From contig NW_026859508.1 of the NCBI RefSeq assembly GCF_026571515.1, forward strand, positions 62,001 through 126,000: a DNA stretch of 64,000 nucleotides. Reading direction: 5' to 3'. Each line of letters opens with the position of its first letter. Position 1 is the stretch's first letter. The stretch comes from Ruditapes philippinarum. Taxonomy: Eukaryota. The notes under the pieces are model-generated. The model was given only the letters and a program-made list of their open reading frames with translations. It searched no databases and was not told the DNA's origin. Made by a program: the position numbers and the translations under genes. Below, in pieces: positions 16,301-27,300 of this stretch.

Positions 16301-19300
16301 TATAATCTATATTTTTATATTCGACGACGTCTACCATTTAAGGTCTTATAATGTTATTAAATTGTGTAATGACATCAGAAAGTAACTTTTCCTTACAGAA
16401 GACATTGCGTGCCCTGTTCATCATTTCAAATGTCCAAAAAGCTATTGTATACCCATGAAGTATGTATGCAATGGTAAGAGCGACTGTCCGGATGGTCAAG
16501 ACGAACATTTTTGTGGTAAATATAAACATCAATAAAACTATGGTCTGTATTTAGAATTGCTGACGTACAAGCAGAAATATGTTGAAAAATTGAAGTATAT
16601 ACTTTCAGATTGAATATGTTTCTTGTACTTGTTTCATTTGTACTGCAGATCCCTTTCATTTCATTTTCTTTACACTGCTTTTCAATGTTACATTTTGTAT
16701 TTTGTAGATTGTATTAACCCGGACAAAAGTGAAGTAACGATATTGTTCCCTGGACCAAATATTATATCTAAACAAAGATCAAAGGTGTTGCAAGAGGTGG
16801 CATCTAAGCTTAGAGGCACGTTGTTCACTAGAAGTTCCTCTACAAAAATATTGAAAATGATGAAAACTGAGGACTCAGGGGTTTATCCTTTCCATTTTGT
16901 TGGCGCTAATGCTTTATCCAAAAGTGAGCACACGGACAAACTAGAGACGGGCCATCTTATCAACTATACTGATGAGTTTGACATTAGAAAACGGAAAATG
17001 GAAATATTGTTTGACAATAAGGATGAAAGGTCAAGCAAGGGACTTATATGGCTAACAGATAGTCTATATGTTACTGAGGCCGAACGAGACATATTTCATA
17101 ACAATCTTGGTACAAATGCTTCAAGATCGATTAAAAAATATAGAGTTATAATTAACGCACGTCCATATAAAGAGATAGATATTCCACGTCAATCGCCTGT
17201 TACAGAAATTATGCTAAGGGACAAGGATATTCTAGGAACATTGGGTTCCAGATTGTTTCCTTCCATATGCAAAGGTAAACATCTCAGTAAATACATCTCC
17301 CTTCCCTTCATATACTATTGTATTTAAAACATATGATAATATGTTAACCTGGTAATACAACAAATAAACCGTGCTTTGATCTTCAACAATCCATTCTAAG
17401 AGCAAGCTTGTAAGACACAAAACTGCCTGTAAAGGTTATTTGTTTTTATTTTCATCAGGAAATTGGTTAAATACACAAAAGGCAGTGCTTTGACTTGCAT
17501 TATGAATTATATTCCAGTGCTTTTAAGTTTATTGCAAATAATTTCAGTCAATTTTGCACTTTAAATTATAAATATTTGATAGTCATATGTCATTAACTTG
17601 TTTTTGTCGTTTAAACTACAGCGAGATCATTTAGCGTTTCCGATATGTGCATGTTGATGTATCTACAAAATCATGTTGGTTGGTACGACTCATGTATGAC
17701 GGTCTTAGCACAACTCATAACAGTGTGCTTTGCAATCAGATAAACTTGTTATCCTTTTGAAAACAAACAAAAGACAATGTGAATTTGTTAAATGCTTGAC
17801 AATTTTACATGACAATATTTTTGCAATACTTTATTATAAGGCATACTGTGCAAAGAGTTCACAATTTGAATAACATGATCATAATGAAATTAGTGACTAT
17901 ATAACATTTAGGGTATGACATTCCGATTTCTTTTATTATTATCTATTTGATTAATATCTAGGTAATCCAGTGGAATGTGAAGGAAGATATCGTTGTAGAT
18001 TAAGTCTGGTTTGCATTCCTTTGTCACAGCTATGTGATAAGATAAAACATTGTCCATTCGGTGATGACGAAGAGATGTGTGACTTCGTTTGTCCTCGGCA
18101 ATGTGTGTGCCAGCCGTTAATTGTCAACTGTTCAAACTTGCTTGACCGAAATGATACAATTAATATATCATCATCGACGCGAGTGTTAGACGTAAGCAAT
18201 AGTGAAGAACTTGGTAGAGCTATTGTCTCAGATGAAGGAAGTTCACACCATGTACCCTTACTGATAAAGTTAAATGTATCAAATTGCGGAATTCAACATC
18301 TGTCAAAATATTCTTTCACTTTTCTAAGAAACTTGTTAACATTAGATATCAGTTTCAATAAGTTGAATGTTTTAGTTAGAGACACTTTTGTATTTCTAAA
18401 GCATCTTCAAGTTTTGAAAATGAATGGAAATGTGTTACTGTCTGCAATAGAGCCTGGGACATTCAATGGCATTTCAAATATTTCAATAGCAGTCAATGAA
18501 GCTAAAATCAAAGTTATAAACAAACACACTTTCGATGGCATAAACATAAATCATTTAGATTTATCCAATAATAACATTGAATCTATAGAAGACGATGCAT
18601 TCGAAGGACTTAGTTGTAGATCAATTGATATAAGAAATAATCCAATAAAGGTGTTTGGTAAGAATATATTCTATGGGATAGAAGGGCTGACAAATTTGAT
18701 AACACCACAGTACAAGTTTTGTTGTCTCAAACCAGTTTATCTTCTAGAAGATAGCTGTTTTCCTTATAAGGATGAATTCTCCTCGTGTCAGCATCTGATG
18801 AGGAACTCGACCCTTCAAACATTGTTATGGGTGATTGGACTTCTCGCACTGTTAGGGAATATTTTGTCCATTTGTTATAGACTTTATTTTGACAGCCAAA
18901 GACTTAAACTTGGTTACGGTGTATTCGTTACGAATTTGGCATTGGCAGATCTTTTAATGGGAATATACATGCTAATAATTGCTATCGCAGATCAAATTTA
19001 CATGGACAGGTATTTATATATATTTTTTTGTTTTATTCACTTTTATTTGAAACAATTATTTACTAGGATCTATTTCTCATTAACCAAATGTCTTGTTTCT
19101 CACCGAAGATTACAACATGTCGTTACTAAGTTAAGACCGCAGCAGTTACATGTTTCCGGAAATTTGACTCAGCCAAACCAAAAGACACATTTTTTTTGTG
19201 AAAAGGAATGTATATTTTTGTAATAAAAAGTAACTGAAATGCCAAAAAAGAATGTTAAAGGTAAAGAATATTAATCATAACATAATGATTTTTCATTGTA

Positions 19301-22300
19301 TCATACTTAATCAAATTAAAAGACTAGTCAGGCTAGGCTAAGATCAATGATTGCTATATTAGAAAATAAGTTTGATTTCCTGTAAAATGTACCGGGAAGA
19401 ACTGAATATAAGAAGATCTACCATTGGCCATTTTGAATTACAAACTGGAATCTGGGAATCGCATTGACTATTATAAAAAAGAAAACAATGTTAAGGATGG
19501 TTCTTGCCATTTTAAAATTAAACTTAAAGGATAGTTCTTAAATAAAATCAAAACGATAATTCTTGCCATATGTTCTTGTCATTTGCATCGAAGACCTGTA
19601 TATGCAAATTAACCAGTTTTACTTTTGCCGAGTATTATGTTTAAAGAGGCTTCTTGTTTTTCATAATTAGCAAACATATAAAGTTTTCTTTATCATTCCA
19701 GATATATTGAAGCGGACGAATATTGGCGTAACAGCGTGTGGTGTAAAATTGCCGGGTTTCTGTCGACAACATCATCAGAGGCTAGCGTCCTTCTCATTTG
19801 TCTTATCACACTAGACCGATTACTTGTGATCAAATTTCCATTCGGACAGTTACGATTTAAACCCAAATCGGCTTTATATGCTGTAATGGTTTCTTGGATA
19901 GTCTCAATAATAGTTGCGATAGTCCCTATATTGCATACTGATTATTTCAAAGGTCGCTTCTATAGTACCTCCGGCGTTTGTCTTGCTTTACCTTTGACGA
20001 ATGACAGACCTCCAGGGTGGCTTTACTCCATGTTCATTTTTGTCGGGTTTAATATGGTAACCTTTACACTGATTGCCGCTGGACAGGTACTTATTTACTT
20101 TGAAGTGAAGCAGCAATCCAAGAGGCGATTGAAAATGCGTACATCACGTGCTAATGATCTGAAAATTGCAAGGAATCTCCTACTTATAGTTACAACTGAT
20201 TTTATCTGCTGGTTCCCAATTGGTGTGATGGGTAAGTTGGTTCCTTTTATGTTACAATGCTTTAAATGGTGAGAATTTAATAGCGCTTCAGTCGGTGTAA
20301 CGGGCATGGGAATTGTTGCATGAACCATAACTGATTCCATTAACTTAAGTGTTGAGGGTTGATTACCGCAAAACCAGTGCAATATATAGGGCATGACAGT
20401 TTATGCAATTCTTTGATCTTTCGTGTCATGCATTTTTATTTAGATAAGTGATCTAATTTTGACGTGAAGAATAACAATTACATGTATCAATTTTCATACA
20501 AGTCCCCACTTTTGTACCTATTTCGCAACATAACTTATTGACAAAAGAAATATATCTTTGTTTTAAAAACAACAAAGAAATACATGATCCTTTTTCTAAT
20601 TGAAAATCTTTTTGTATTGACTAGCATTCGTTTTCTATTTTATACCTCTTTCTATTTACAGGAGTCCTTGCTACGATGGGTCACGTGATTCCTGGGGATA
20701 TGTATGCCTGGACCGCTGTTCTGATTTTACCAGTAAACTCCGCTCTTAATCCATTCATGTATACGTTCTCTGCAATCTTTGGAAAGAAGGTATAAATTTG
20801 AGAGTTGAAATATTTTAAATTGACTCTTGTTAATCATTGTTTTGAAAATAAAGATTTCTCGTCTTACATTTTATACATAAATATTCACGAAGAGCTCTTT
20901 TTAATGTTGTGATGGAAGAATTATCAAATAAAAAATCTGTTAGAAACAACGGCAGAATAAATGACAGTTATCAAGGTATTCTATTTCAATAAATACCGTA
21001 CAATTATTAATAGTATTGGTTAACAAAAACTTGTTTAAGCTTATCTAAACAATGATTAAGCAGTAAACTTAATGCATATGTGACAAACTGAACATACCAA
21101 CATAAGAAGTAAGAAGTATAGCGTGGTCTATCTATCTTTTGTTACAGGCATCTCCGTCGTGAAGATGTACATATAATTTTTGTGCCAATTAAATGTTAAA
21201 AAGGATAACGCAAACATATTATTGTTCTGTATTCCATATCTGAAACTTTTGAGCATACTTATTATTCATTTCTTTTGCCATTTCATATGGCGAAAACATT
21301 GCAAAATTTGCAATTATAAACAGCGCCAACATATAAAGTGAACATGGCAAATGTGTTAACTAAATAAATGATGATTTTTGTGTTCGTGTTTTTTAGAAAT
21401 TCCTTCCGAACATTGACGAACAGACAAGGAAAGAGTTATTAAAAGGTTTGAATACAAACACTTCTAAGCTATTTTTAGTAAAGAAAATTTATATTTGTGT
21501 CAAAACGTTGTTTTTTTTTTTCATCCAAAAGAGTCGAAGCTTTTTAGACATGGTCAACAGCACAAAGTAACAATTTGTACTTCTATGATTTATATGAGTG
21601 CTTCTATTTGAATAGTCAAATGTTTTTTATTGGCAAAAGGAAAGTTCTCGCAAGTTATAACGTCATTATTTCAGGGAAAATGCGAAATGGATCTCGTATT
21701 GTCGTACCTTCGCGCCCATATGAGGATAGCATTATAATTGCCCGGTACAAGACATCATTTTTGATCCACAAAATATTCATGATTCAATATTTCTTCGTGT
21801 TATTTCAAAGAAATTCAAGTCAAGATGCAAAAGAACCTTAAGTTAACGTCGTTCTTCATTAATATTTGTCAACTAACAAATACGCTGGCAATTATTTTCT
21901 TTCAGATGTTGGGCCTGCTGTACTGAACATTCTGCCATATTATTCCGGGAAACAAAGTGACGGTGCAGTGATAACGCTACGGGAATTATTGGATACTCAA
22001 CATCTTACATTTCTTGATTGTGCTTTTATTGTACGCCATCTTTCCAACTATCTTACCATTCTTCATGGAGACGGTCTCGTGCTACAGCCAATCAATGAAG
22101 ACAATATTTTGGTCCATGTGAATAATTTCAAGCAGGTAGTTTCATATAAAAATCTCAATTGCTATAATACCTGTAAAAAAGAAGAAAATAAACACAAAAA
22201 ATTCTTTGTTCCGGAATTATCGCTTCAATAATTTGCCAATTTTTATTCTTCTAAAGTTATTCTTATTTACGTTTTCTGGTTATTAATTGTCCAATTTGGT

Positions 22301-23107
22301 AGTTGCATACAAATAACTTGAACATATTTATTGTCTTTTCGTTGGCTTCTTACGTCATTGATTACATAACGAAATAACAATTGCAGTATTTAGGCGTGCA
22401 GCAACAATGACTAGTGTATGCTTTCAGTATCTTCACTAACATACAGCCTATCTGGACCAGTATAACTTCTGCACACCCATACAGTCTGACCATTTGCACA
22501 CACATACATTCTACCTGGACCAGTATAACTTCTGCACACCCATACATTATGTCCATCTGCACACCAATACAGTCTGACTGGACTAGTGTAACGTTTACAA
22601 ACATATACAGTCTGATATGGCCTGTATAAAGTCTACACATACCCGGACTAGTCGCAAGTCTACACACCCGTCTCACCGTCGCTCCTCAATTTTTTTACTT
22701 TGATATCACTACTACTTGTATTAAACAACATATATTTCCTAATTTAACAACGACAAGTCTACTGCACATACAAATTCTGCAATGAATAGATGACGAATCA
22801 GATGAAGATNNNNNNNNNNNNNNNNNNNNNNNNNNNNNNNNNNNNNNNNNNNNNNNNNNNNNNNNNNNNNNNNNNNNNNNNNNNNNNNNNNNNNNNNNNN
22901 NNNNNNNNNNNNNNNNNNNNNNNNNNNNNNNNNNNNNNNNNNNNNNNNNNNNNNNNNNNNNNNNNNNNNNNNNNNNNNNNNNNNNNNNNNNACGTGCAGG
23001 TGTCTGTAACGCCAGTTTTGTCATCAAAGAAGGTTGACCAAGAAGAAGATGTGTATAAACTGGGACTAATAACGCAGAAATTGTTGCAGAATGTCGGGAA
23101 ATGCTGA
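537..23107 (+). CDS. GRL101-like (type C LGR) mosaic GPCR with C-terminal pseudokinase; 5' end lies upstream of the window. Inferred exons: 537-751, 1035-1332, 2131-2328, 3023-3250, (3351-3419 tentative), 5798-6004, 6202-6280, 6769-6944, 7384-7647, 8221-8352, 9161-9274, 10697-10816, 11200-11382, 12186-12358, 12899-13014, 13481-13611, 15598-15732, 16399-16515, 16708-17274, 17962-19009, 19702-20231, 20662-20789, 21397-21445, 21906-22135, ~23000-23107
   Basis: All listed exons have AG/GT (one GC) ends and join in one continuous frame of ~1,870 codons. They contain LDLa repeats, LRRNT (CPRQCVC), LRRs, the hinge KFCC...[15 protein letters not shown], and a rhodopsin-class 7TM (GN in TM1, NLALAD in TM2, DRL in TM3, CWFP in TM6, NSALNPFMY in TM7). 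LDLa+LRR+7TM is the GRL101 layout. Confidence 0.9.
2131..3250 (+). CDS. GPCR exons encoding a divergent CUB-like domain 2
   Basis: Exons 2131-2328 and 3023-3250 read [14 protein letters not shown]...RYCN...EGFHIKY; phase 1 junctions. Confidence 0.6.
2369..2589. mobile_element. Palindromic MITE, family P (copy 1)
   Basis: ATGAGCCGCGTCATGACAAAACCAACATAATGGGTTTGCGACCAGCATGGATCCAGACCAGC...inverted at the other end; ~90-100 bp arms. Confidence 0.85.
4142..4546 (+). repeat. 81-bp minisatellite, 5 copies, open in one frame (27-aa repeat)
   Basis: Unit GACAGATTGTCTGACATAATTTTTGAAATAGAGGAGGAGTCTCGCAAAATAGGACGTCCTCCAGACGACATCAGCCAATGT; no indels between copies. Confidence 0.95.
5204..5412 (+). mobile_element. 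tRNA-derived SINE (CORE-like), full length with 14-bp target-site duplication
   Basis: A box TGGCGAAGTGG, B box GGTTCAAACCC, body GTTTCCTTGAGCAAGAAACTTTAC; perfect direct repeat AATTTGATATATAA at 5190-5203 and 5413-5426. Confidence 0.9.
5798..6944 (+). CDS. GPCR exons encoding a C-type lectin domain
   Basis: Three exons read KCLSF...[28 protein letters not shown]...YIGL...[18 protein letters not shown]...C...WETTTC...LVCE. Confidence 0.85.
7384..7647 (+). CDS. GPCR exon encoding a kringle domain
   Basis: [28 protein letters not shown]...[16 protein letters not shown]...WDYCPLERC has all six kringle cysteines; symmetric phase 1-1 exon. Confidence 0.92.
7725..7920 (+). mobile_element. tRNA-derived SINE (second family)
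   Basis: A box TAGCTCAGTTGG and B box GGTTCGATCC, followed by a non-tRNA body ending CTGGGCATGTAAAGGAACC. Confidence 0.6.
8221..11382 (+). CDS. GPCR exons encoding four LDL-receptor class A repeats
   Basis: Exons 8221-8352, 9161-9274, 10697-10816 and 11200-11382 each contain F.C..G.C....CD...DC.D.SDE..C-type motifs. Confidence 0.9.
8878..9105 (+). mobile_element. tRNA-derived SINE (third family, Meta-SINE-like), 5' truncated
   Basis: GGAAGTAACGAGCTAGTTTACGGAACGTCGGTTGTTCTACATAGGTGCCC...GAAATAATGCAC...GACGTAAAACCCAA plus A-rich tail; related copies occur elsewhere in the window. Confidence 0.7.
11320..13611 (+). CDS. GPCR exons encoding a fibrinogen/Caspr-like module
   Basis: [30 protein letters not shown]...CSQK resembles the start of fibrinogen-C/Caspr/COLFI-type domains; the remainder is divergent. 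Confidence 0.5.
12390..12580 (-). mobile_element. Same SINE family, degenerate copy
   Basis: Reverse complement of the 5204 element (TTTCTTGCTCAAGG, CCCCTGACAGGGTTTGAA, CCGCCAC). Confidence 0.75.
14718..15269 (+). mobile_element. Non-autonomous ~550-bp dispersed element with subterminal palindrome (copy A)
   Basis: Near-identical inverted copy at 32950-33498; internal hairpin ATTTTCACGAGTGGCGTAGCCACGAGTGAAAAT. Confidence 0.85.
15598..16515 (+). CDS. GPCR exons: GRL101-type variant LDLa repeat and a canonical LDLa repeat
   Basis: [23 protein letters not shown] (15598-15732) and [35 protein letters not shown] (16399-16515). Confidence 0.85.
16708..17274 (+). CDS. GPCR exon encoding a degenerate VWA-like domain
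   Basis: A 567-nt phase 1-1 exon bounded by cysteines (DC...SIC). It contains EVTILF (beta1), [18 protein letters not shown] (cf. F...GAR...KVLIVLTDG) and the terminal [14 protein letters not shown] helix. Confidence 0.6.
17962..20789 (+). CDS. GPCR exons: last LDLa, LRRNT, ~7-8 LRRs, hinge and 7TM domain
   Basis: ORFs 17970-19223 and 19736-20272 plus exon 20662-20789; LxxLxLxxNxI repeats and rhodopsin-family TM motifs. Confidence 0.95.
21397..23107 (+). CDS. GPCR intracellular tail encoding a truncated pseudokinase C-lobe
   Basis: TLRELL...[37 protein letters not shown] matches kinase subdomains V-VIb, with HRD replaced by [13 protein letters not shown] matches subdomain IX. Spliced in frame after NPxxY; stop TGA at 23105-23107. 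Confidence 0.7.
22405..22665 (+). repeat. Degenerate tandem repeat next to the gap
   Basis: Repeated CTGGACCAGTATAACTTCTGCACACCCATACA variants. Confidence 0.8.
22810..22991. other. Assembly gap (182 N)
   Basis: Run of N. Confidence 1.
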
Positions 23108-24391
23108 GATATCCTATATTTATATCAAAACAATGAGATATCAAATGTTTGTTATGTTGCACAAAAGTGCGTGTAATTGGTTACATTGGTTTTGAATTCA
23201 AACTCATTTCGAAGACGATGATCCATCAACAAACTTTTTATATTTTTTAATTTTTAAGCATTAGTTCTAGATAAATGTTTTCCGAGAAATGGACACTACT
23301 CGGAATAGAATATGGTCAGTGTTTTCATAAACCAATCGGTCGCAGATGCATTGATTAAAACATTAAAAACTTTAATTTTTGTTTTATTGATCGTAAATGT
23401 GTTGTATCGATGTGTTGCTTTGAAAAAAAAATACTTGCACTGTTAAAGTTTTTTTATACTTTTCTTCGTCAACTTTTTTAAAAGGCAGATCCAAAATATT
23501 TAGGATAGTAGATTTGGCGTTTAAAATAAAACTATTCGACAAAGGCAAATGTGAAAAAAAATATTTGAGCACTGTCTTGCAATTTGTTGTTTTAATGACA
23601 TAATATGTCAACGTCATATATGACGTCAAAGTCATACCGGAAGATTAAAATTGTAATTTTGTTAAAGCTGTTGTGGTTCTAAGCATTAAGTTGTGTTTTT
23701 TTTGTAAATTGTGTTTGGAATGATATTACATTAATTGAGCGTTTGATTAATGATATAGTTTATTAAATGAGTCGTGTGTAATAGTATCATTTATATATAT
23801 TGTAGCGAAAATATGTTCTAAAGAATCTATGACGTATTGTATTGTAGCTTCACTAGTTATTGTAACCATTTCTGTAAAATAAACAGTGAGTCTTATTCTC
23901 AAATGAGTTCAGTATTTCGTCTATGCCGCCATCCATATTTCAAGACTATTTTTTCTCCTTCTAGCTGTATACCGCCATCAATTATATTATGAAAATTGAA
24001 TTCTCCATTCATCTGATCTTGATTTAAGAGATGATATCAAACTCAATTATTAAATTTTTATATCAATTAGTATTGCATTGTACATGCAATTATTTGCCGG
24101 TAGTCATAGACTATTAGTACACGGATAAACACAAGACATAGCAGCAAGTTCAGTTCCTCCCATGGGATATATTATAATGATTCAGAACATTAATATTCCA
24201 TTGATATTTTATTGCCTCCAGTGGCAAACAAAAGCATCGGCATTTAAGCCACAATTAGGCCCTTTAAATATGTACGTATCCAAATAAATAAATCATAATA
24301 AAATCCGTAAGCTTTTAAGCAATAGATGGAGTCGATAAATGGAAGAGATTATACTCTTCTCCATATCTAATTGTATTAATACGGAATTAAG

Positions 24392-27300
24392 ATGGATAGA
24401 GTAAAGTTGAATGTGTCCGGGACGTATTTCGAATTTGATAAAAAATTATTAAAGGAAGGAAAAAGTCCAAAGTTAACTAGAATATGTAGCGAGTCACGAA
24501 AGGAGGGTATACCGATGGAAGCAACAGTGGACTGCTCGCCATTTGTATTTGGTTCGATCCTGGCATACCTTCAAATGGGAGAGCTTCATATTCCGCCGGG
24601 AGTTTGTCCCGGTGCATTTCGCCGGGAAATGGAATTCTGGGAGTTGGATTATGACTGTCTCCATTCATGCTGCGTGTTCAGGTAATTTTATAACGAAAAG
24701 TATGGATATAAAATCATACATTACACAGCACGTATTCTACTCATAGTCTCCTAAATTATGTACGAAAGACATTCTAAGTATTTTTAATTTAAAGAGAATA
24801 AACACGGTGCCAGTGTATAACATTAGAAATAAATGTATAACTGATGTTTTACAATGTAACTAAATTTCTCCAGTAAATCTTCAGTACAACAACAATACAT
24901 TATCAAAGTAAAAATAATTAATAGTATTAATTATTGATATCTACTATTTAAACAATTAAATACTTTTAATATTCTTTGCAAAAATATACATGTCTAGATA
25001 TCAATCATTCCTGGACGAAGAAAAGACGAGAGAGGAATTTTTTCGTAAAGCTCATCCTGCGAAAACAATGGTGGCACCAATATCCACGCTTCCTGTTTCC
25101 GGTTATGCGTCAAGATGTAAATCAAAACTATGGGGAATCATTGACAACAACGAGAACTCTATACCAGCAAAGGTTGTTTTTATATACTACTTACTTTTTA
25201 TTTATTTTTGTTATTTTGTAAGTACGTGCCAACAATTGTATTCCATTTTGCTGATGTAGGGCTTTCACCTTGTTAGACAATTTAAAAAAAAACTCCGCAT
25301 GCATGTATACATTATTGGATAGATCCCCATGACTCGGGCTCAATGTAAAAACAATTATATGCAAAGATGGTCCCGGTTATTCTATTTGTTTTATTTTCAA
25401 AACATAACTGTCAAATGACATCACACTAGCACGTGGAGAAGCTTGACACAAGCAATGGTCAGTATGAAATAGAGATAACGAAACTCAGAATTACCAATTT
25501 AGACGTATACTTTTATGCAAGAATTAAGTTAATGCACCTTTCTTCTTGCATTACCATCTGTACAAGCCCTCGGCCGTATTTAATCCTTCGCCTTTTGTCC
25601 TCGTGTTTCTGCAGAGGTTCATGCACGAAAAAGGTACACTAATTCATTTGAGACGTCTTCGGTACATATGCCCATGAAAACTCGCATTTGACTGTTATAG
25701 CAAAGTTGTGGTTTGGAAAATGTTGTAGATAACATCGCGACAAAAACATTATCACGCCCGGCAAACTGTCGCTCCACTTCAAAAGTGTGGTGTACGGTAA
25801 AACGAGCGAACGGCATTTCCAAGATAGAGCGGAAGACCGATTAAAACGGATAATTGTAAGTGTTGTTTAATTTTATGTCTTGTTATTCATTTAAATTGTA
25901 TTTTTTCGAAAAACGGAAACTGTAGTTCCGTGTAAGATTGATTTAGGCTTTCAATGATCTAAGCTGTTACAAATAGCCCCGGAGAACATTTCTCCCTGAC
26001 GAAGAGAACGACGATTTGTAGAATATTGAACTTCCCAACCATTAAAATGCCATACCCTTCGGATTTCTTTAAAAAGTGTATTACGAATATATCAACCCGT
26101 AATAAGAACTTGTCCTTCGTGCATTATAAATTACTCCTGAATGATTTCTTAAATTTGTAAATCGATATTTTTCGAAAGTAGTGGAGCCAAAGGGCAAGAG
26201 ATGGAGCGAAAGGTTCGATGTTGAGCGCAAGGCGATATCAATTTGGCATATTGGGAGGAGGTGGTCATGAATTTTTATATATAAAAGCTTTAGAAGTTAA
26301 AATCGACATTTTGTTAGTTTATTCAGAGTATCTGTGAACAAAACGAACGTAATAAAAAAGCAGTTCTCAGTCGGTGTACGGACTAAAATAATTAATAATT
26401 GAAAGGCCTAGTTATAGTAGAAATAAATTATTATCTTATCATATTTCTCCGGCTTCACATTTTAGTATGTCTATTTTAACTTTGAAAGATTTTATTTATA
26501 GAAATTCGTAGACTATGCTCTTTACACCAACTTAATGTCGCCTTGCGCCCAACAACCGACCTTTCGCTCCATCTCTTGCCCTTTGGCTCCACTACTTTCG
26601 AAAACTTTTAAAAAGCCACCAAGAGTAGTTTATTTTGCACGAAAGACTAGCTCTTGTTACGAGTTTATATTTTTGTAAAACACTTTTTCAAAAAATCCCA
26701 AGTGTAGAGCGTTTTCATGGTTTGAATTTGACATTTAACAAATCGTCGTTCTCTTCGTCAAGGGGAACAGTTCTCTCAGGCTTGATATAACTTTGTTTTT
26801 GTAACAGCTTAGATCATTGGAAGCCTAAATCAATCATACACGGAACTACATTTTCCGTTTTTCGAAAAAATGCAACTTAAATGAATTACAAGACAAAAAC
26901 ATAAACAACATTGACAATTATCCGTTTAAATCGGCCTCCATAAAAAATTCATAATTAATTTCGTTTAAATGGAATAAAGTTGTAAATGTGTCATAAACCA
27001 ACCACTTCCCATTATCTATTTGTTTTATTTTTCTCCTTTTTGATTTTTTTTCCTTTATCTTATTTGAAGTGATTTAATATTGTAGTGAACATTAAGAAAG
27101 TACTACAAGAAAATTTGAACATTGTTGAAGGACAATAATGTTTTTGTTTAATTATTTTTTTTTAAATAAAAAATGTTTTTGTGTTGGTTTTTAAAAATTT
27201 TTAACCCTTTTTAAAGTCAAAGCATGTAAGTCTGTATGGGGTAACCCCGAAAATTTAAAGCAAATTAGTCAGACTTTTTCTCCCCTTTTTGACAGAAGGT

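Follow-up and report, generated by a model that had tools for sequence, protein, structure and literature searches.

The forward strand of a 64,000-nucleotide (nt) window of the genome of the venerid clam Ruditapes philippinarum (contig NW_026859508.1, positions 62,001 to 126,000) carries, at 17962-23107 of the window, the 3' half of a GRL101-like receptor gene. The gene combines low-density lipoprotein receptor class A (LDLa) and leucine-rich repeat (LRR) modules with a rhodopsin-type seven-transmembrane (7TM) region. We have analysed the cytoplasmic tail encoded behind the seventh transmembrane helix (TM7), which an initial annotation had described as a truncated pseudokinase. The receptor probably ends in a catalytically dead domain derived from the core of a protein kinase.

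Exons and transcripts of the receptor gene

The Pfam domains Ldl_recept_a, LRRNT, LRR_8 and 7tm_1 lie on consecutive exons that RNA contigs join into one chain, all on the forward strand. The exon at 17962-19009 encodes the last LDLa module, the LRR region and TM1-TM2 (LRR_8 at E 1e-21, with LRRNT and Ldl_recept_a); it is covered by RNA contigs and has AG/GT boundaries. It is followed by the exon for TM3-TM6 at 19702-20231 (7tm_1 at E 6e-21), both flanking junctions of which occur in RNA contigs. The next exon, at 20662-20789, holds TM7 with the motif NPFMY and the start of the cytoplasmic tail, as read from its translation and RNA junctions, and is 53-83% identical to the TM7 exons of paralogues.

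Three coding pieces lie downstream of TM7 and share one frame, in which all of the peptides quoted after NPFMY in the initial annotation were found. The first is a small linker exon of 16 codons (21397-21445; K-F-L-P-N-I-D-E-Q..., from translation and RNA junctions) that carries the family motif F-x-P-x-x-x-E-Q. Among venerid family members the motif is conserved, directly after helix 8, in the fuller form KKxF-N/L-P-S/N-x-x-E-Q followed by R or T; in the window gene it has this 16-codon exon to itself. The second piece, which we call the kinase-like exon (21906-22135), has 76 codons (21908-22135), includes ...TLRELL... and would span beta5 and the hinge, alphaD, alphaE, the remnant of a catalytic loop, and beta7. 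Its 'LH' has the invariant His at 22064-22066, LQP at 22082-22090 replaces HRD, and the Asn position of the catalytic loop is kept at 22103-22105. The third piece is the last exon, whose visible part (22992-23107; translation and RNA contigs) encodes a short beta region and then a helix with the pattern D-x4-G. This helix contains DVYKLGLI (23048-23071), the D-x4-G being DVYKLG (23048-23065), at the position of kinase alphaF, or subdomain IX. The receptor stop codon follows at 23105-23107, about 12 residues past the alphaF-like motif. The predicted tail comprises about 140 residues after TM7, of which the last 110 or so form the putative kinase-derived domain.

RNA was mapped on 17900-23450 using Logan contigs of the RNA-like runs X1, X2 and X4, which represent three studies, together with raw reads of the polyA RNA-seq run X21. 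RNA depth was restricted to the predicted exons. Junctions 19009>19702 and 20231>20662 were found in contigs of X1 and X2 with GT..AG ends, junction 20789>21397 in a contig of X1 and in three raw polyA reads of X21, and junction 21445>21906 in a contig of X1. Contigs of X2 and X4, from two studies, pass from 22135 to 22992 with exactly 10 letters between, which places the start of the last exon 10 nt inside a stretch of Ns at 22810-22991 that is otherwise intron. The contigs over the last exon reach 23097 and 23102. RNA contigs and reads thus confirm the three in-frame exons that had been proposed after TM7, and the contigs continue into the last exon rather than stopping shortly past that helix.

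Two points of the initial annotation were settled by these contigs. Its last acceptor near 23000 (the 'cag' at 22997-22999) proved to be internal, with the true exon start 18 nt upstream in the X2 and X4 contigs; the extra 18 nt (10 + 8) amount to six codons, and the frame is therefore kept. The annotation had also allowed that a DFG or APE motif might be hidden in the gap at 22810-22991. The contigs run straight from 22135 into the last exon, so that there is no further exon in the gap and no room for either motif.

RefSeq already models this exon chain, since the R. philippinarum protein P0069 (912 amino acids, aa) has the window's tail, with the domain unnamed. P0069 was left out of the profiles and models described below. 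Between 18046 and 20023 the RNA contigs differ from the window at approximately 2-3% of exon positions. The differences are mostly transitions, several are common to runs of different studies, and they are in keeping with a highly heterozygous species rather than with RNA editing.

The linkage of the tail exons to the receptor was also seen at paralogous loci. A six-frame search of the clam's own genome (1.4 Gb) with the 76-aa exon gave 18 further matches at 25-34% identity. At no fewer than 10 of these 18 loci, once fetched, exons for TM3-6 and TM7 that belong to a paralogous LRR-7TM gene lay 1-4 kb upstream in the same order and on the same strand. In all, the genome has at least 14 exons paralogous to the 76-aa exon, each placed downstream of the TM7 exon in a paralogous LDLa/LRR/7TM gene. 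The paralogous tail exons have an acceptor phase and donor position equivalent to those of the window exon, and homologous last exons were found in nine paralogous loci. The position of the tail exon behind TM7 at these loci indicates that the exons are part of the receptor and not of a neighbouring gene. At one paralogue (L016, on the 11,498-bp contig G000:C3872) the kinase-like exon of the RefSeq model P0067 is read on beyond its donor site into intron sequence, the tail ending ...KVLIYLFYTYIK. This is a truncated-model artefact, because the contig stops before the last exon.

Three further features were noted around the end of the gene. The last intron contains, shortly before the N stretch, an imperfect 63-bp tandem repeat (22439-22615; 2.8 copies, 79% matches) that may be the cause of an assembly or masking break there. 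A locus of the same genome (L001, G000:C7995:82408-85635) translates without X over at least the final part of the window's N stretch, so the Ns seem to come from masking of the window and not from a lack of sequence in the assembly. The next gene downstream is represented by an open reading frame (ORF) at 24392-24685 on the forward strand, starting MDRVKLNVSGTYFEF, which resembles the T1/BTB tetramerisation domain of a Kv (Shaw/Shab-type) potassium channel.

Resemblance of the tail to the protein kinase core

The window tail was searched exon by exon. For the kinase-like exon, a profile (A1) was built from the 76-aa exon and 14 paralogous exons. Against the PDB, A1 gave 159 matches at E<=10, and the best 60 of the 159 were all protein kinases. 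These matches lie in one register, from the end of alphaD through alphaE and the catalytic loop to beta7. PAK2 (1.1e-4), STK33 (2e-4) and the pseudokinase VRK3 (6e-4) had the best E-values, followed by PAK1, ULK2, calcium-dependent protein kinases (CDPKs) and CK1-gamma, and some CDPK alignments reach back across beta5. Judged from these sequence comparisons, the resemblance to kinases is beyond chance once the paralogues are included and is not so for the single sequence. The likeness to kinase subdomains V-VIb put forward in the initial annotation is borne out with that qualification.

Three relatives of the receptor, from different lineages, gave matches to Pfam kinase models at the same profile positions. 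The tail of the Mercenaria protein P0086, which keeps HKHGLFYKEIKPENVLIY and retains a literal catalytic-loop string (...IKPENVLIY), matched Pkinase at E 5.7e-4 (profile positions 95-134). The tail of P0214 from the crinoid Antedon matched the same model at E 0.031 (86-132), and that of P0256 from the ark clam Tegillarca matched PK_Tyr_Ser-Thr at E 0.093 (90-138).

An alignment of 50 non-redundant tails displayed the same architecture. The 'LH' ends a long helix, with H in 90% of the tails, and hydrophobic residues occupy positions +14 and +16 from this His, as in kinase beta7. The last helix is opened by D/N-x4-G (D in 68%, N in 22% and G in 84%), a spacing equal to that of kinase subdomain IX (D-x-W-S-x-G). 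In the window gene, the spacing from LH to NILV is identical to that of LH..G..HRDLKPENILV.

Structure models were consistent with these alignments. AlphaFold2 folded A1 with a predicted local distance difference test score (pLDDT) of 67.6 into a strand (19-23), a helix (24-30), a long helix (35-55) and a strand (68-72). A Foldseek search with this exon model returned nothing at E<=0.001, and kinases made up six of its 10 top matches (template-modelling score by query, TMq, 0.5-0.65). An exhaustive VIA search of 48,161 chains listed 50 entries, every one of them kinase-fold (Z 5.8 to 3.4), with residues 10-75 of the model aligned; they include PINK1, LRRK2, PknB, MNK2, TBK1, the MLKL pseudokinase, STK33, JAK, BRAF, KSR, IRAK3, Bud32 and APH. 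Two ESM Atlas models restricted to the tails of Mercenaria relatives were also compared. That of P0014 matched Pkinase clusters in eight of 10 rows (template-modelling score by query 0.58-0.68), 91-116 residues being aligned to kinases up to the C-terminus. That of P0063, the relative closest to the window gene, matched them in six of 10 rows (0.39-0.53). In an AlphaFold2 model of the 7TM region and tail of a third Mercenaria protein (P0136, alignment A4), the tail had a pLDDT of 60-88 and was predicted to begin with a short strand, followed by two helices resembling alphaD and alphaE, a strand resembling beta7 and, where a kinase has alphaF, a closing helix of 20 residues.

Much of a kinase is missing from the tail. 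The N-lobe (Gly-rich loop, the beta3 Lys of VAIK and the alphaC Glu) was not found, as only about 30 residues separate NPFMY from the beta5-like segment and RNA adds no exon; the tails of all relatives have 140-220 residues. HRD occurs in no paralogue. DFG was not found in the RefSeq product or in the mollusc relatives, and the spider and centipede relatives keep DFN or DIN after beta8. An APE motif was likewise not found in that product or in those mollusc relatives. For an activation segment, only six codons fit between the kinase-like exon and the visible last exon, and alphaG-alphaI are missing, the stop codon following about 12 residues past the alphaF-like motif. The translation and the RNA therefore agree with the initial annotation that HRD is replaced by LQP and that no Gly-loop, VAIK, DFG or APE is present. 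With the N-lobe, HRD, APE and alphaG-alphaI absent, the tail is predicted not to be an enzyme. The structural core is kept: alphaE still closes with 'LH', beta7 is still hydrophobic, and alphaF still has its acidic residue and Gly (D-x4-G). In PKA, the catalytic loop is anchored by a structural contact between the His of alphaE and the Asp of alphaF; this contact indicates that the residues conserved in the tail belong to the structural core and not to catalysis.

Several observations weigh against the reading of the tail as a kinase-derived domain of the receptor. Expression is low, with nine reads in 1.6 Gb of one polyA run. The single 76-aa exon matched one PDB entry, STK33, at E 1.3 and no Pfam family at E<=10, and a search of 1.84 billion representatives with it returned only its own ORF and a spurious repeat protein. 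Nor did the Pfam KIND and kinase models match any of the 15 exon peptides of the window and its paralogues when these were taken one at a time. All of the Pfam kinase scores of the relatives are under the gathering cut-off (19.8 bits for the best, vs 31.7), and their E-values need a multiple-testing discount because about 38 proteins were scanned. A profile of the last exon (nine sequences) found no kinase in the PDB, giving two chance matches; the assignment of alphaF accordingly rests on position, motif spacing and the structural alignment of relatives. For DVYKLGLI as subdomain IX, a reading made in the initial annotation, sequence statistics alone thus gave no support, and the position, the D-x4-G spacing and the alignment of the relatives' whole tails speak for it. 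In the structure models, the alphaF of the window tail is likewise assigned through its relatives. Finally, a domain of about 110 residues that lacks half of the C-lobe may not have a kinase-like tertiary structure on its own.

A conventional explanation is that the tail is the ordinary, fast-evolving C-terminus of a G protein-coupled receptor (GPCR) with a few amphipathic helices, and that a hydrophobic helix, an 'LH' and a beta strand resemble a kinase by chance or convergence. We consider this improbable. Chance would hardly place the best 60 of the 159 PDB profile matches and all 50 listed VIA entries in the kinase fold and in one register, or lead three relatives from different classes and phyla to match Pkinase-type Pfam models at profile positions 86-138. 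Nor does it readily account for the literal IKPENVLI in one paralogue, for the DFN/DIN that the spider and centipede keep after beta8, or for the kinase matches of both ESM Atlas whole-tail models. In its structural identity, the tail is probably a kinase-fold remnant.

Distribution in the GRL101-like family

LRR-exon and alignment searches identified RefSeq proteins named 'G-protein coupled receptor GRL101-like' of Mercenaria mercenaria and R. philippinarum as the nearest named relatives. In these proteins NPxxY is followed by KKxFNPSxxEQ and by the shared tail, which has about 125 residues there. None of the 240 family members among the matches listed had a kinase or KIND domain in its precomputed Pfam assignments. 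The tail region is unnamed in Pfam and RefSeq.

A hidden Markov model (HMM) of the tail, with 124 positions and derived from 26 venerid tails, was searched against 258 collected proteins. Matches were found at the C-termini of proteins from venerids, pectinids, Tegillarca, Sinanodonta, four Haliotis species and Patella; the mollusc-wide search for a 7TM region followed by a kinase-like fold that had been suggested at the outset thus finds the domain in several bivalves and gastropods. Outside molluscs, the HMM matched Antedon (2.5e-6), the centipede Strigamia (4e-6) and the spider Oedothorax (3.8e-6). Within the same set it had no match in the canonical GRL101 of crustaceans, insects, mites and the horseshoe crab, nor in Asterias, Lineus, Branchiostoma or a second Ruditapes gene (P0199). 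A second iteration also went without canonical GRL101, Branchiostoma, Asterias and Lineus, whose tails are short or of low complexity. The Lymnaea sequences available are partial.

A tree of 76 receptors was built from the 7TM region only. Canonical GRL101 forms a well-supported, tail-less clade. The tail-bearing receptors fall into three clades, one each for the molluscs, the arthropods and the crinoid, and starred branches separate the mollusc receptors from the canonical clade. Mapped on this tree, the tail trait needs five changes, vs 20.5 with shuffled labels, of which the starred branches force only two; as the tree is unrooted, gain and loss of the tail are indistinguishable on it. This tree speaks against orthology of the window receptor to canonical GRL101 of the Lymnaea and arthropod type. 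The tail domain marks an old paralogue lineage of GRL101-like receptors that is distinct from canonical GRL101, and the initial annotation was right, by both the tail HMM and the 7TM tree, that canonical GRL101 has no such domain. As far as sequence matches allow, the range of the lineage is bivalves, vetigastropods, patellogastropods, a centipede, a spider and a crinoid.

The ectodomains of the tail-bearing venerid proteins of 1,400-2,000 aa contain CUB, C-type lectin, kringle and other modules. By precomputed Pfam assignments, the LDLa/LRR part of P0157, P0163, P0167 and P0169-P0176 is preceded by CUB, C-type lectin, kringle, F5/8 type C, TSP1 or VWA modules. The presence of these modules in relatives makes the mosaic ectodomain noted for the window gene a trait of the family. 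Expansion of GRL101 genes in R. philippinarum has been published (PMC6831834), and apple snails have a GRL101 expansion with expression in the tentacles and labial palps (PMC6573481). This expanded receptor family of bivalves and snails has been linked to environmental sensing (PMC6831834, PMC6573481).

Known systems, remaining alternatives and possible role

The KIND domain (Pfam PF16474; Spire, PTPN13/FRMPD2, KNDC1) is in principle the nearest known module to the tail. Both are non-catalytic derivatives of a kinase C-lobe without an N-lobe, and KIND serves as a protein-interaction surface. KIND has about 200 residues, extends through alphaI and occurs in cytosolic scaffold proteins, whereas the window tail has about 110 residues, stops after alphaF and is attached to a 7TM receptor. 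PAKs are the kinases reported closest to KIND. It could be supposed that the tail is a true KIND family member newly placed on a GPCR, given the shared principle of a C-lobe-only, non-catalytic derivative and the PAK kinases at the top of the PDB profile matches. This is less probable still than a chance likeness. Pfam KIND, a model of 197 positions, had no match at E<=10 or E<=1 in the 15 exon peptides and 18 full-length relatives. In a six-frame search of the genome it found one other gene (three exons, contig C9267) and a weak match on C2335 (E 6.9, below the cut-off), and no receptor tails. The tail also ends just after alphaF, without alphaG-alphaI. Membership in KIND was rejected on the lack of a PF16474 match and on a length half that of KIND.

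Receptors with pseudokinase or kinase-homology domains (KHDs), such as the guanylyl cyclase KHD, HER3 and plant LRR pseudokinase receptors, have complete bilobal folds on single-pass receptors and often bind ATP. The window gene is like them in joining an extracellular ligand-binding domain, here LRR, to a dead kinase-derived domain just inside the membrane that is presumed to be a regulator or scaffold. Unlike the KHD receptors and HER3, it keeps only the alphaD-alphaF core, and does so on a 7TM GPCR. Fusions of GPCRs and kinases occur in protists (Dictyostelium RpkA, the oomycete GPCR-PIPK and other 'GPCR-bigrams'), where intact lipid or protein kinase domains are carried by non-rhodopsin 7TM proteins of non-animals. 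A 7TM receptor with a C-terminal kinase-related domain is common to these fusions and the window gene, but the latter encodes a metazoan rhodopsin-class leucine-rich repeat-containing GPCR (LGR) that ends in the truncated and dead remnant of a protein kinase. Canonical GRL101 and other type C LGRs (Lymnaea GRL101, arthropod GRL101, RXFP1/2) share the ectodomain logic and 7TM family of the window gene; in contrast to it, canonical GRL101 (arthropods, Asterias, Lineus, Ruditapes P0199) has low-complexity tails without a tail-HMM match and forms a separate clade. Literature searches found no report of GRL101-type receptors with a kinase-like tail, or of any rhodopsin-class GPCR of animals whose tail carries a folded remnant of a kinase. 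As to the suggestion of an undescribed system, the domain is unnamed, it is not peculiar to the window gene, and RefSeq already models the protein.

It is very improbable that the kinase-like exons come from a different gene or from an aberrant, rare isoform, with the functional receptor ending shortly past TM7. In favour of this view, expression is low, the chain is backed by contigs and three junction reads only, and a few RefSeq relatives stop early or run on into introns (such as P0067 and P0070). Against it, the contigs of three studies link the TM7, linker, kinase-like and last exons without alternatives, at least 10 paralogous loci have the same exon order, as do proteins of more than 10 other species, and the next gene, with the Kv-channel T1 domain, begins only at about 24392.

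The explanation that we favour is that of a kinase-derived, catalytically dead tail domain on the receptor, a reading of the initial annotation that transcripts, conservation among paralogues, profiles and structure comparison uphold. The mRNA continues past TM7 through three short exons, which encode a cytoplasmic tail of about 140 residues. The domain would be arranged in the order beta5/hinge, alphaD, alphaE, catalytic-loop remnant, beta7-beta8, short linker and alphaF, and would be incapable of ATP binding or catalysis. By analogy with KIND and other pseudokinase remnants, its most likely role would be to dock other proteins, or to act as a scaffold for them, once the receptor is activated; we advance this function tentatively, at somewhat below even odds. 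Alternatively, the domain may act as an intramolecular regulator of the receptor's intracellular face, next to helix 8. In MAP kinases, alphaD, alphaE and beta7-beta8 form docking grooves. The part retained in the tail is that docking-groove part, which fits a peptide-binding role.

A bolder proposal, which we regard as rather unlikely, is that these receptors constitute an unrecognised and ancient class of LGR-type GPCRs, older than the split of the bilaterians, with a built-in 'mini-pseudokinase' (the alphaD-alphaF core) that couples activation to a specific cytosolic partner. If this were true, the partner could be, for example, a kinase, a phosphatase or a cytoskeletal regulator, and the signalling output would be independent of G proteins or would modify G-protein coupling, in the same receptors that are massively expanded and carry mosaic ectodomains.

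Dead domains derived from kinases are known as scaffolds (KIND, pseudokinases), and 7TM-kinase fusions are known in protists. The tail described here would be a small natural case of a kinase fold that has been trimmed far down and is still kept by selection. Its HMM provides a simple marker that separates this lineage from canonical GRL101. Conserved from clam to spider and crinoid, and carried by an expanded family, the tail offers a concrete, testable handle on the signalling of these orphan receptors.

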